64,000 nt of DNA from Syncephalis fuscata S228 (GCA_025786725.1 JAHLTZ010000012.1:662020-726019); one strand, 5' to 3'; positions 26,390 through 47,330 are shown, counted from the stretch's first letter. The notes: generated by a model from the letters alone, not told the origin. Program-made: numbers and translations.

Positions 26390-26705
26390 CTAATAAACAT
26401 AAGAAATCAAAGGTCTTGATTCACCACTGGCCATTGTACTGAATATACTGCGCATGTTTCTGCTGGCATTAACATCACGCTGCCATACCGTACGACAATC
26501 ATTGTTTTGACAAACAAATACGCTATGCATTGTACTGTTGTGTTTTTTCAAATTTAAACCTGCCATCTCCTTTTTCTTGCATTTGGAACAGACTTTGATG
26601 TATTGTATTCATCAATATCTACAATCACCAAAAGTCCTTGTCGCTCAGCAGTTTTGAGCACCTTTCTGCAATGACTGGCCCAGTCTAGCAGCAGCCCTTG
26701 TTAAT
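26390..26705 (-). mobile_element. Fanzor/TnpB-like nuclease remnant A (RuvC-II, Zn finger, RuvC-III; 5'-truncated)
   Basis: Hand translation with one A restored in a homopolymer: CRKVLKTAERQGLLVIVDIDEYNTSKVCSKCKKKEMAGLNLKKHNSTMHSVFVCQNNDCRTVWQRDVNASRNMRSIFSTMASGESRPLISYVY*. Confidence 0.85.
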
Positions 26706-26711
26706 TTTGAT

Positions 26712-26948
26712 CTTACATCACAGATATGCCCAAAATGCAATAGTGGAATAATAGAAAATAGAAGAGACCATTCAGATGCAATAATTCGTATTGTATATAA
26801 GTGCAATAACAACATCTATGGAATAGCATGTAATTGCGATTATATGGCTTTTATTAATATTCGATCAATCCTTCTGCACATGGCCAATAATAACAATAAT
26901 AATCGGCCTCAAATGTTTCAAAGAAATCAGATAGTATGTTACATTATC
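26712..26948 (+). mobile_element. Fanzor/TnpB-like nuclease remnant B (Zn finger and RuvC-III, degenerate)
   Basis: Open frame LTSQICPKCNSGIIENRRDHSDAIIRIVYKCNNNIYGIACNCDYMAFINIRSILLHMANNNNNNRPQMFQR, matching the TSQ-CxxC...C..WNRD.MA..NI...RP..F.R pattern. Confidence 0.75.
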
Positions 26949-27055
26949 TTAATAGAACGTAATACAACTATGTTGTATATAATAATAGCATGACTTCAAT
27001 TGAAACAGATTTTGCTTTAAGGACTCCAAATGTGGAGCCAAAGTACAATTCAGCC
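26949..27055 (+). ncRNA. Candidate Fanzor omegaRNA scaffold or element 3' end (copy 1)
   Basis: Non-coding sequence 3' of remnant B, homologous to 47034-47137 (-). Folds as a long stem-loop. Function is inferred only. Confidence 0.4.
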
Positions 27056-27115
27056 AATATTGAAATGAATAGTGTATTAATCAATGGTATTTATAAAAAA
27101 ATAAAGTTATATCAA

Positions 27116-27763
27116 TTATCGCCACAGTTTGACATAGAAATACATAAAGACGAATGTGGCAATAATAAAAAGAAGCATGTAACACATCCAGCCACCAGCA
27201 CGTTGTCTCGCGGCCATTCGTTGAAATCGCTTAACTGTTCCATCAAGGAAAGAGCCAGTGGTGTCGAAATCATCATTCTAATGTTGTATTGATTGATAAG
27301 TATTGTATTGTATTTAATCGACTATTAATAAACTTACCATAGTATTAAGCGTACGATTCTGTTCGCGTACTTCATCACCAATACCAATTGTAATCTAGAC
27401 AAATAAACAAATAAACAAATTTGGCGTATGAACAAGCACGTATTTCTACTTTGCTATTGTACTTACCTCGCGTAGCATTGCTACTTTACTTTGTAGACCC
27501 GACACGCGTTGGTCGCTAAAGCCATCCATACTGCCATGGTCATAAGTATCGACTGAACCTACGCCACCTCTATGCATCGGTCCAGTAGATGTACCTTCTC
27601 CACCGCCAGCTTGTACACCGGTGGCGTGACCATAAAGTAAGCGATTACGGTCATTAGACGTATTGTCCCACGACGCCTGTTGCTGCTGACTAGAATAGTC
27701 GCAATCAATGCTATCGTCTATATTTTATACGCTTTCATCTCTAACCTACCTCCAATGACTCAT
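27116..27763 (-). CDS. BET1: Bet1-like Qc-SNARE (4 exons)
   Basis: Spliced MSHWS...DQRVSGLQSKVAMLRE|ITIGIGDEVREQNRTLNTM|NDDFDTTGSFLDGTVKRFQRMA, followed by the C-terminal TM segment WMCYMLLFIIATFVFMYFYV. Missed by the ORF track. Confidence 0.88.
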
Positions 27764-27823
27764 AGTAAGGGAGTAAAGTTGTTAAAAGACAATCAAGAAA
27801 GGTATAACAGACGATGAACTTGT

Positions 27824-27848
27824 GTAAGTGTAAGTGTAAGTGTAAAGT
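27824..27848 (+). repeat. (GTAAGT)n microsatellite upstream of BET1
   Basis: gtaagtgtaagtgtaagtgtaaagt read directly. Confidence 0.7.
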
Positions 27849-28334
27849 GCGTTTGTGGGTGTGTGAGTATGACATTCCGTCTATTGATGTCATAACACTG
27901 CCATTAACCACCAACTGAATTGCTTATACTGAATTAATAGTCAATGTATTTATAAATTATAAAAGAGTAAATAGCTAGCTATGAAGTAATATTATGGTAG
28001 TATTATAATATTTATAAAAGTTAAAAGTATGGCTTAGTCAGTGATAGGATGAATTACTAAATATCAAGCTATATTGTATATTTACTTGCATCTTTGTTTA
28101 AACATTATTGCAATATATATATTTAATATCAACACTTAATTAATAACGACTAAGGCTATGATGATAAATATTGCGTAGCTTTCACGAGGTGACCTTTATC
28201 GGATTCACATTGTTCCGATGCGTACATAGATCCCGGATCGTTTGAAGCCGTTAAATACGTGCTAGTACCGACACGTCATACACTCTTTCATTTCTATCGT
28301 CTCTTTCTGGTCTTACTTTTTAGCTCTTGACAAT

Positions 28335-44386: not shown

Positions 44387-44781
44387 CTAAGCATGAGAGG
44401 CAAGTGTCTTTATCTTTTCTTCTACTTGAGCAGCGCTCAAGTTATCCACGATCGCATGCTGCTCCTTGCCATGATCTAAGCATTACTCCTGTTAGATAAT
44501 ACACGGTTGCTTCTACACCAATTGCTTACCATAACGAGCATAGATTACTGGTTTAATGCCAGTTGCTTCACGAACAAGGATCGGTAAGTTTGGATTGGCA
44601 CTTTTAAACGCTGTATAGTTGGCTTTGACATATTCACTACGTGGAATCCATTTAGTGTCTAACTACGTATTGAATCAATAGCATGCTTTGCTTACCGTAC
44701 ACCCTGGCTGGAAGGAGACGTTTGGCAAAGATGAATACGCAATTCACGCAATTGCTTAGCAATAGGACCACGCCACGACAT
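44387..44781 (-). CDS. NDUFA2: Complex I subunit NDUFA2/B8 (3 exons)
   Basis: MSWRGPIAKQLRELRIHLCQTSPSSQGVR|EYVKANYTAFKSANPNLPILVREATGIKPVIYARY|DHGKEQHAIVDNLSAAQVEEKIKTLASHA*. Confidence 0.92.
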
Positions 44782-45076
44782 GATGAACAGAAATACGCTT
44801 AACAGAAAGTAATAAAAAATCGTATTGTTGATTGACTATTATTTTGCATCCCCAAGGACAGTAAATCATTTTACGCAACTGATTGTAGTGATTTGATTTG
44901 ATTAAATTGCGTTTAAATGATCATTCATAATAAACATTAATGTAATATCATCATTCGCAATAAACATTAGTATAATGTAATAACAGTATTATTTTTATAA
45001 AATAGAGTTGATTGTAACAGAGCATTGTATTAGTAGTTGCCATTTTAAACATTTCAATAAAACTTGCGTTTAAAAT

Positions 45077-45546
45077 CTAAAAAGTCTCATTGAGACGAAC
45101 CCGCGTTCTCTGCGGTGATTGTGTTGTCTGAAATAATCTGGCAAATTCAGCTGGTCTGCCATGACATCCCGATTCCACATCACCTGGCAGTTTTGGCAGA
45201 CTAAGGTGGTGTGGTGGGTATGACCATTTACAGCTACCTTTTCTATTAGACTTCTTTCCTTATAGACATGACAAATCTATTAAATTGTTACATTGTTAAA
45301 TAAAATAATGATTACATTAAATACTTACCTGAGAAGAAAGATATTCATCAATTTTAATGGCAACAAGATCTCCACGACACTCTCGTCGTTTCAACATTTG
45401 CCAGCACCTGTTGACAACAGCAGATCGATGGCCCTTGTATACATTGTTCTGCTTGCCAAACATTGCATCGCCGAATACAATAAGTGGCATTTTGTCAGTC
45501 GTTTGTAACCTTGCTGGACGCCATCCTTCTTTTCTCTTGTGGATCA
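45077..45546 (-). mobile_element. Intron-containing Fanzor/TnpB-like remnant C
   Basis: KMPLIVFGDAMFGKQNNVYKGHRSAVVNRCWQMLKRRECRGDLVAIKIDEYLSSQ, then a GT-AG intron at 45277-45328, then ICHVYKERSLIEKVAVNGHTHHTTLVCQNCQVMWNRDVMA. An internal deletion follows, then RPAEFAR in another frame. Confidence 0.85.
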
Positions 45547-46014
45547 CTGTTAATTATATATACAAAGGCGTAGTTTAGAGTAGATATGTTTACAAGTATT
45601 TTATTTAACATTCAATAGACACTGTTGCTTATATACTGAATCCAATGCTTAAAAGTTTAGTTGTCAATTATAACATCATGTTCTATGATAATGCATTTGT
45701 TTATGCATTGATATTTATCCTTCTTATTTACCAGTGACATTGTTTTATGAATATACTTGTCTTTATTGTTTGTTGTTTGTCATTCTTATTACACTCATTG
45801 CTTTACTGTTGACACTGTTTTATGAATATATTTGCTTTTATGCAATTAATTTTTATTCTTTCTTTTATTCCACCACTTAAGCAATTCTCTCATCTGTATT
45901 TTAGTTTGTTCATAGTTTTTTTATGTACAATGCCATTCGATTTGTGAATTGTATATATTACATTATTTACTAATTAAATAAAGATAGTTTTTTACATCAA
46001 ACAATTTATTAGTT

Positions 46015-46468
46015 ATTTATTGTGATTTGATGATTAAATGACTATTTAATAAATATTCATATATCTAAACTAAGCTTTCTTTCCATTGAGTATGATGATG
46101 GGTGGTAAATGACATCAAGTTTAAAATACTTATTATTATAGATTTATTATCCAGTATGCATATATCCTTAATTGTTTATATTATTTCTATACTATTTCAT
46201 ACTGCTATATATTATTCTAAAATATGCTAGACACGTTTGATTGTTTATATGCAGCAATATACTTTGCTCATTTTCCTCATTGTATTATATGCACTATAAC
46301 TTAATATTGTTTTATATGCTTTCTTACTGTTCATTTATCATTTATGAATCATTCTATACTCAAATAGCCTTCCTCTATCCAAAACTACTTTTATTTTTGT
46401 TCTAGCTTTATTATTAATAAATGTCGACTAATTCCGCTCATTGATCATGCATATATACTCAATAGCTT
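46015..46468 (-). repeat. Dispersed non-coding repeat, copy 1 (more AT-shifted)
   Basis: The reverse complement aligns by eye with 54406-54810, with shared blocks attagtcga.attta, gttttggataga, aatgagcaaagtatattgc, ggatatatgcatactggataa and accacccatcatcat. Confidence 0.85.
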
Positions 46469-46852
46469 GAACATTACTAATCTCGTTCAATATTACATAT
46501 TCATTATAATGGTTATCATTTTATTATATATTGGCTATACGCTTTTATAGCCGTTGTCGGTATAGTTTTAACTTTTTTATTAATAGAATTGATCCATCGC
46601 ACTTAGTCTGTTCACTGAGTTATATTGGTAGAACAAACAACATGAATATGAACAGAGTTATGTTTTATTAAGATTATTTATAATAAACTAGATCATGGCA
46701 ATTAATTATGATTTTAATGCTAATCAAGCAAAATGATGAGTATATATGGTAATAACACATAATGTGATGATATATGAATACCGGATAATGAATCTACAAT
46801 GATGATACAGTTTATTTAACTCAACTAACAAGTACTAAAAGTTAAAAGTTAA

Positions 46853-47020
46853 AATGAAATGGTACATAGCATGTATATATTACCGCAACAACAACGATTG
46901 CGGAATGGTATGGAATTAATCATATGGCTTTTATTAATATTCAATTAATCTCTCTACACATGACCAACAATGATCGGTCTTAAATGTTCCAAAAAATCAA
47001 ATGATATGTTACACTATTTA
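46853..47020 (+). mobile_element. Fanzor-like remnant D (RuvC-III end, degraded; same family as B)
   Basis: NNDCGMVWN/NHMAFINIQLISLHMTNNDRS*MFQK; DNA similarity to 26810-26945. Confidence 0.7.
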
Positions 47021-47033
47021 TTTAAAAGGCTAC

Positions 47034-47330
47034 GGTTGGATTTTACTTTGCTTCTACATCTGTCCCCAAAGCACAATTCGTTCCAATCAGAGTTATGCTG
47101 CTATGATGTACAACATAGTTATATTATTTTCTATTAAAATATTGTTAATAAATTGATTTAAATGATGTAACATATTATTTGATTTTATTAAAATATTTGA
47201 GGCCAATTATTATTGTTGTTAGTCATGTGTAGAAAGATTGATCGAATATTAATAGAAGCCATATGATTGCAATTCCATGTCGTTCCTCATTACTTCTGTT
47301 GCATGTTTGTCATACTGCACATCAAACTGT
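47034..47330 (-). mobile_element. Fanzor-like remnant E plus conserved 3' non-coding tail (same family as B)
   Basis: WNCNHMASINIRSIFLHMTNNNNNWPQIF* at 47188-47277, followed by 47137-47034, which aligns to 26949-27055. Confidence 0.78.

Follow-up and report, generated by a model that had tools for sequence, protein, structure and literature searches.

We analyzed a window of 64,000 nt from Syncephalis fuscata S228 (C24:662020–726019 of a 29.4-Mb assembly in 371 contigs; G+C content ∼35%), in which a first-pass annotation had described five C-terminal fragments of Fanzor, the eukaryotic TnpB-like RNA-guided nuclease. The fragments (denoted A–E) were reread by six-frame translation, which reproduced all of the motifs ascribed to them, and profile searches found exactly these five places. 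Instead of five separate fragments, they form two composite repeat blocks, A+B (∼26117–27076) and C+X+D+E (∼44824–47687, where X is a non-coding repeat), each of which recurs elsewhere in the genome in the same order. The fragments are probably neutral fossils of Fanzor1 genes once carried as cargo by DNA transposons of a single family, bounded by terminal inverted repeats (TIRs), that were internally deleted and joined in composites.

In the first block, fragment A lies on the minus strand and is split between two overlapping frames. Its upstream piece (26557–26700; residues ..LLVIVDIDEYNTSK) ends in IDEYNTSK (Glu codon 26608–26610) and is out of frame with its C-terminal piece (26393–26608; KVCSKC..FVCQNNDC..WQRDVNASRNM..RP), which holds a CxxC..CxxC zinc finger, the RuvC-III motif WQRD (Asp codon 26474–26476), and an RP tail. 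The frames are separated by a 1-nt deletion near 26594, in the A-run after IDEYNTS, which is common to approximately half of the aligned A copies. Past the stop codon follow ∼275 nt of right-end region (26117–26392, minus strand) that finish in a degenerate terminal repeat, at a sharp boundary (26115–26119, minus strand) common to more than 12 copies; the last ∼165 nt are also present in complete B-type elements. Head-to-head with A is fragment B, a relic of family B (26701–27076, plus strand). Its open frame (26658–26990) reads TSQICPKC..YKCNN..NCDYMAFINI..RPQMFQRN, with the catalytic Glu and Asp both replaced. Nearly all B copies carry a run of four to seven Asn codons directly before the RP tail (e.g., 26880–26900 in the window).

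In the second block, fragment C is composed of an upstream exon (45329–45553, minus strand), with the RuvC-II strand and the alternative Glu (PLIVFGDAMFG..IDEYLSSQ; Glu codon 45344–45346), and a last exon (45073–45276, minus strand; ICHVY..LVCQNCQVMWNRDVMA), with the zinc finger and the RuvC-III motif WNRD (Asp codon 45166–45168). C had been taken as frameshifted; what we read from the sequence is that TSQ and the zinc finger are separated by a predicted spliceosomal-type intron of 52 nt (45277–45328, minus strand; GTAAGT..TAATAG, phase 0). In the window copy, RD is kept, and the first CxxC, which reads C-H-V-Y, has lost one zinc ligand through the replacement of its second Cys by Tyr. This CxxC is intact in copy L023 (L-numbers denote loci in the genome), relative to which the window copy is missing 45 nt just after RDVMA. 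The 3′ untranslated region and right end of family C (44824–45072, minus strand) were delimited in an eight-copy alignment, in which homology stops near ..TTGGGG..AAAGTAAATA. Repeat X (45563–46805), which is AT-rich and multi-copy, connects C to D and E. Fragment D (46885–47026, plus strand) is a short stretch of B-family relic in inverted orientation and forms an inverted repeat with fragment E (47054–47687, minus strand), itself a nearly whole B-family left-end unit. In translation, only the tail NHMA(F/S)INI was recovered from D (46870–46980) and from the relic open reading frame (ORF) of E (47191–47286). The terminal repeat of E, GAGCTACTGTACTTTGACT (47669–47687, minus strand; C24:709688–709706), exactly matches a 19-mer found at the ends of many copies in the genome.

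Assignment to Fanzor1

The Pfam family PF07282 (Cas12f1-like TNB domain) matched A above its curated cut-off (E = 6.7e-6) and B and C below it (6.9e-4 and 0.04, respectively); D and E alone had no Pfam match. Using a profile of 17 full-length relatives (A1) on the six-frame translation of the window, we detected A (E = 1.7e-24), C (2.6e-12), B (2e-5), and, weakly, E; the upstream piece of A was matched at E = 3e-4. A profile of B copies (A3) found B, E (1.4e-17), and D (8e-11). Nowhere else in the 64 kb scored with the Fanzor1 or B profiles, and the N-terminal two thirds of the protein was unmatched there, in agreement with the earlier view that the window holds no intact copy. Compared with one another, A3 and A1 aligned with 97.4% probability (E = 1e-11, A1 columns 568–641).

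A HMMER search with L006, the best open A copy (131 codons), recovered 580 relatives among 1.84 billion representative proteins. The full-length relatives were 640–1037 amino acids long, with a C-terminal PF07282 as their sole Pfam domain, and the nearest protein clusters were mostly from Mucoromycota taxa. The A1 profile matched solved Fanzor1 proteins over nearly their full length (SpuFz1, E = 3e-52; GtFz1, 9e-44; PpFz1, 5e-39) and matched Fanzor2 and TnpB in the zinc finger only. A first search of the PDB with a single A sequence was weak (Cas12g, 0.05; SpuFz1, 0.75) and was superseded by this profile search.

Invariant positions in A1 were the Asp of DPG (RuvC-I), the Gly of GFGDW (G672), the Glu of IDExxTS (E712), four Cys, W-R-D, and the Pro of the RP tail; the invariant Gly is in agreement with the replacement of the canonical RuvC-II Glu by Gly that is known for Fanzor1. 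The rearranged RuvC-II is represented by VFGDAMFG and IDEYLSSQ in C and by IDEYNTSK in A, whose window copy has lost the preceding strand that other A copies retain. As had been claimed, A and C keep both the IDE-x-x-(T/S)S Glu and the RD Asp. The C-terminal motif (T/S)(T/S)-x-x-C4 followed by RD is complete in A, and C keeps RD with one Cys changed to Tyr. B, D, and E keep the zinc finger and read C-N at the RD position, which places the B lineage outside the motif. Based on these comparisons, we classified all five fragments as Fanzor1-derived gene tails. A and C resemble SpuFz1 (8gkh), GtFz1 (9cer), and PpFz1 (9cf0) in their RuvC-II Gly, alternative Glu, zinc finger, and RuvC-III RD. Unlike these proteins, the window fragments amount to the last ∼70–150 residues only and could not form an active site: The RuvC-I Asp is absent in all five, and the other two catalytic residues are absent in B, D, and E, so none would encode an active nuclease.

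The three lineages (A, B/D/E, and C) share 31%–43% pairwise amino-acid identity, consistent with the roughly three families proposed before. Further TNB-domain matches occur at C310:93895–94215, C246:85796–86107, C361:148349–148516, C307:39455–39730, and C92:11390–11647. By their scores, these five fall outside families A, B, and C; more than three Fanzor lineages are probably present in this genome.

We searched the assembly for an intact Fanzor gene, scoring the best candidates only and reading exon by exon. The full-length relative P0009 matched the genome over its last ∼130 residues only, and A1 matched 68 places, nearly all at profile positions ≥500. An N-terminal-only profile (A2) had a sole matching locus in the assembly, C317:733605–734309. 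The sole copy found with N-terminal, REC-like, and RuvC-I parts (C317:733060–735690, minus strand; L029 1238–3204 plus L050) is a multi-exon family-C pseudogene with a B unit upstream. It contains REC-like pieces, a single-copy 235-codon open frame with TDG..DPG (RuvC-I), and a RuvC-II/IDEY exon, and it is broken, with its zinc-finger/RuvC-III exon replaced by another repeat. The earlier suggestion to look for full-length copies with the RuvC-I Asp thus led to this one broken locus. PF07282 matches genome-wide were all in open frames of ≤168 codons. Among the weak matches, the loci with the longest open frames, considered as full-length candidates, contained only B relics, and a 2.6-kb composite in L033 and L035 had no long ORF. 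Across the 29.4-Mb assembly, these profile searches recovered no intact Fanzor gene.

Copies, termini, and composite blocks

All three families are repeated across the genome, as expected from the earlier proposal of several Fanzor lineages with non-autonomous derivatives. For the C-terminal piece of A, at least 18 relatives were found in the genome at 59%–87% amino-acid identity, with copies elsewhere at 83%–87% identity, and ∼100 weaker matches are B- or C-type. The A unit, ∼668 bp with a sharp 3′ boundary, occurs in a long form (at least 18 copies) and in a short form that holds the last ∼380 bp only (at least 20 copies), at 84%–91% identity. Family C has ∼17 genome copies, 85%–94% identical, a range that also holds for the upstream exon. 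With the B profile, 1,228 candidates came up at first look; the 150 of them that were scored all had E < 1e-30, which identifies B as a high-copy element. Repeat X has no ORF, and the genome contains at least 30 copies of its first 360 bp (85%–92% identity). The repeat regularly follows B relics on their downstream side and may represent the inner part of the B-type element.

Repeat counts are inflated by near-identical duplicate contigs. L033 (C113:201962–208999) and L034 (C221:1–7044) are 98% identical across 7 kb, and L016 (C317) and L017 (C80) are 97.6% identical, a 776-codon gene included. These multi-kilobase duplicates on small contigs are probably haplotigs or recent segmental duplications.

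Frameshifts and stops are frequent across the relic copies. The B consensus reads I-N-x-D-L-T-S-Q and W-N-C-N, with both catalytic residues replaced; the master copy of B, D, and E was hence catalytically dead by the time it multiplied. The ratio of nonsynonymous to synonymous substitution rates (dN/dS; Nei–Gojobori) among 10 B copies was 0.49 in frame versus 0.44–0.70 in the five wrong frames, and among 12 A copies was 0.72 in frame versus 0.49–0.52 in wrong frames. Since the in-frame values do not fall below the range of the wrong-frame controls, the relics are under no protein-level constraint.

The A right end terminates in ..AGTCAAAGTAAAGTAGCTC(C), and each B unit starts with the inverse sequence, GAGCTAYTKTACTTTGACT, ∼215 bp upstream of the relic. 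One 19-mer is thus common to both, standing at the right end of A and, in inverse orientation, at the left end of B. Allowing up to two mismatches, this 19-mer occurs 285 times in the genome (143 forward and 142 reverse), compared with a single occurrence of the reversed control. In the window, the terminus is intact at 47669–47687 and degenerate near 26117. The 19-bp repeat stands at both ends of two complete elements, which measure 1,175 and 1,183 bp; in the latter, a B-type left end and relic are combined with a right end of A type. The shared 19-mer and this mixed element place the A-type and B-type elements in one TIR family. The TIR is common to all three lineages, with a loose resemblance at the C right end. 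The part most widely shared by the A- and B-type elements is the final ∼165 nt ahead of the terminus. The flanks often read TATG before GAGC..GCTC and CATA after it, and we take TATG and CATA to be an extension of the TIR.

At least six loci with short C copies join positions 912 and 3432 of one long C copy. The same junction across this 2.5-kb gap in all of them points to a single internal-deletion derivative that was later multiplied. In some A copies, the last exon is preceded by an ATG mini-exon (ATG-GAA-CTG-GAT-G) and a GTGAGT..CAG intron; these copies may have arisen by the same kind of internal deletion as C.

Units of these families are also joined to one another. In the first block, the A relic with its right end (26117–26700, minus strand) stands head-to-head with the B relic (26701–27076), and the same A/B junction is repeated in L003, L005, L008, and L010; in L004, L041, L044, and L045, a B left end and an A upstream region are interposed between A and B. 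The second block, read on the minus strand, runs from a B-type left terminus at 47687 through the E relic, the inverted scrap D, ∼1.2 kb of repeat X, and the C relic to the C right end near 44824. Window positions 44947–47688 are collinear with L013 and partly collinear with L012, L020, L033, and L038. Two inverted termini of any kind may have been recognized as one element, which would have allowed such composites to multiply.

Proposed history and alternative explanations

In the ancestral element, a Fanzor1 gene of 640–1000 codons in several exons would have stood between a left end and ∼250–290 nt of 3′ sequence, followed by a right end, with both ends closed by the 19-bp repeat GAGCTAYTKTACTTTGACT. 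Internal deletions would have taken out the N-terminal two thirds of the gene (WED/REC and RuvC-I), leaving the last exons beside the right end. The resulting non-autonomous derivatives, and composites between any two inverted termini, would then have been amplified in trans by a putative transposase; it is this mobilization and the order of events that we infer. Homology, common boundaries, a common deletion, common termini, copy numbers, and neutrality are all directly observed in the copies. Several points weigh against this history. The C right end resembles the 19-mer only loosely. The TIRs anticipated by the first-pass annotation were found, and the linked transposase and target-site duplication were not: The latter was not seen at the window block, L044, and L052 (the loci inspected), and neither a transposase nor an empty site was found, leaving the superfamily and the mode of mobilization unproven. 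Given the 371 contigs and best-candidate scoring, a divergent or unassembled intact Fanzor may still exist, and segmental duplication or redundant haplotigs could account for part of the multiplication (L033/L034 and L016/L017).

Among other accounts of the relics, one involves guide RNA. The relics could have been retained for guide RNAs that their right ends continue to produce, for use by a Fanzor encoded elsewhere (unassembled or highly divergent), in the manner of the Spizellomyces ghosts, whose omegaRNAs are functional in Spizellomyces punctatus (PMC10432273). This would fit with the last ∼165 nt being the most widely shared segment across A- and B-type elements. It would also fit with a 15-bp helix between the RuvC-III codons (26460–26476, RDVNAS) and the 3′ region (26354–26369), which is 95% paired in 16 copies and has two pairs changed on both sides. 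Yet the statistics of this helix were equaled in 39–45 of 500 shuffles and are not beyond controls. Nor did the A right end have excess folding energy (z = −0.33) or more than little covariation (alifold term, −0.88), and it diverges as fast as the dead coding part, with ∼85% identity in each. Rfam gave nothing relevant over window positions 25900–27300. The RNA evidence comes from one usable run, X1, available as contigs; it is polyA-type, and spliced joints mark it as RNA. Over A/B, it has only contigs that are 90%–95% alike and derive from other copies. Contigs with the family right-end sequence, also 90%–95% alike, have a summed depth above that of the relic ORF, but they represent paralogous copies within long transcripts, and contig depth is no measure of expression. 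With no intact Fanzor found in the assembly by the profile searches, we consider this explanation unlikely.

The remaining alternatives are less probable still. The excess of 3′ ends might reflect one-ended rolling-circle (Helitron2-like) transposition or 5′-truncated retro-copies, for which the strong 3′ overabundance, the precedent of Chlamydomonas CRe-1/2/3 (Bao and Jurka 2013, PMC3627910), and the direct repetition of the right-end motif immediately upstream of certain A copies could be cited. However, this direct repeat is accounted for by the left terminus of a neighboring B unit in inverse orientation, copies have fixed breakpoints in common rather than variable ones, and the upstream partner is a defined left end with the inverse 19-mer, that is, a TIR; introns kept in the relics argue against retro-copies in particular. 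We therefore regard a one-ended or retro-copy origin as very unlikely. Another proposal, that the short open frames (110–150 codons in many B copies and 131 in one A copy) encode a retained zinc-finger/RuvC-III mini-protein, strikes us as highly improbable. Several B copies are stop-free over 110–149 codons, atlas clusters of 131- to 148-amino-acid TNB-domain proteins are common in Mucoromycota, and many top HMMER matches are 116–183 amino acids long. But most copies have stops or frameshifts, the in-frame dN/dS equals that of wrong frames, the candidate frames are without a demonstrated start codon or promoter, and the short database proteins resemble last-exon or relic gene models, some of which extend upstream into the RuvC linker. 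A conserved mini-Fanzor among these database proteins was rejected on reading their sequences and on the wrong-frame dN/dS control. Finally, the fragments are almost certainly not an unrelated zinc-ribbon family or chance motif matches. Such a view could draw on the missing Pfam match of D and E alone and the weak single-sequence PDB search (E = 0.05–0.75), but it is refuted by the profile matches to Fanzor1 and by the conserved order and spacing of the motifs. A profile search had been named as the check on this point, and it returned Fanzor1 rather than a zinc-ribbon family.

We favor the fossil reading over these alternatives, and it leaves room for a narrower idea about the right ends. There is a slim chance that the ∼165-nt right end, common to the three lineages, still gives rise to omegaRNA-like transcripts, as ghosts that either outlive all intact Fanzor genes or serve one hidden divergent Fanzor. 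If true, this genome would be a natural large population of guide-RNA ghosts (hundreds of loci), and the role of ghost omegaRNAs without a nuclease would become askable.

The genes around the first block are expressed. Window genes have short GT..AG introns, which spliced RNA contigs of run X1 bear out, and the neighboring genes are spliced in this run. An NAD-type glutamate-dehydrogenase-like gene (23666–25900; 625-codon open frame at 23784–25661) has a 90-nt GT..AG intron (23667–23756) and is abundant in the RNA contigs, with heavy cover in X1. On the other side is an expressed minus-strand gene (27095–27500) with introns at 27278–27337 and 27395–27466 (CT..AC on the plus strand). As this gene begins, at 27095, ∼20 bp past the B relic, the A/B block occupies nearly all of the intergenic space.

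Relation to known Fanzor elements

Fanzor1 families on TIR elements without a transposase of their own were described in Mucor, Rhizopus, and Phycomyces, with 10 families in Mucor circinelloides, four in Rhizopus, and three in Phycomyces (Bao and Jurka 2013, PMC3627910). The relics in S. fuscata are like these Mucorales and other fungal Fanzor1 elements (ROr, PBl, MCi, and SPu; PMC3627910) in belonging to the same protein clade, with the signature D..(T/S)(T/S)xx-C4-RD and multi-exon genes, and in having several families per genome and TIR carriers that encode no transposase. Unlike them, nearly all copies here are C-terminal relics, with one broken copy that bears an N-terminus. ROr-4 and PBl-3, as well as MCi-4, are reported to have 9-bp duplications and MuDR-like TIRs; no duplication was seen here at the three loci inspected.

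A second comparison is with the Spu-1 ghosts of S. punctatus, in which 134 ORF-less ghost loci with active omegaRNAs were counted against 42 gene-bearing loci (Saito et al. 2023, PMC10432273). Like the elements here, these ghosts are non-autonomous, are bounded by Fanzor-element inverted repeats, retain the right end, and exceed the gene-bearing loci in number. The Spu-1 ghosts measure ∼550 nt, are free of any ORF remnant, occur together with 19 full-length genes, and express an active 75-nt omegaRNA; the elements here, on the other hand, hold coding relics in a genome where an intact gene was not found, and their omegaRNA is a candidate only. The CRe-1/2/3 elements of Chlamydomonas, which are non-autonomous Helitron2 elements, share with our elements a marked 3′-end overabundance and internal deletions (Bao and Jurka 2013, PMC3627910). 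They differ in having variable 5′ truncation, Helitron2 ends, and variable 7- to 19-bp duplications, in place of the fixed breakpoints and 19-bp inverted repeats seen here.

Fanzor1 families have been published for Mucorales before, as have ghost loci without an ORF, and there is no new mechanism here. The case is of the same kind as the Mucorales Fanzor1 elements and the Spizellomyces ghosts at a later stage, at which relics and composites are all that is left. As such, it provides a worked example of the end state of a Fanzor1 transposon: hundreds of internally deleted tails and composites, with apparently no nuclease gene. It can be used in annotation, to label the many small TNB-domain gene models of Mucoromycota as relics instead of genes, to follow the life cycle of OMEGA elements in eukaryotes, and to select genomes for asking whether ghost right ends lead a life of their own.

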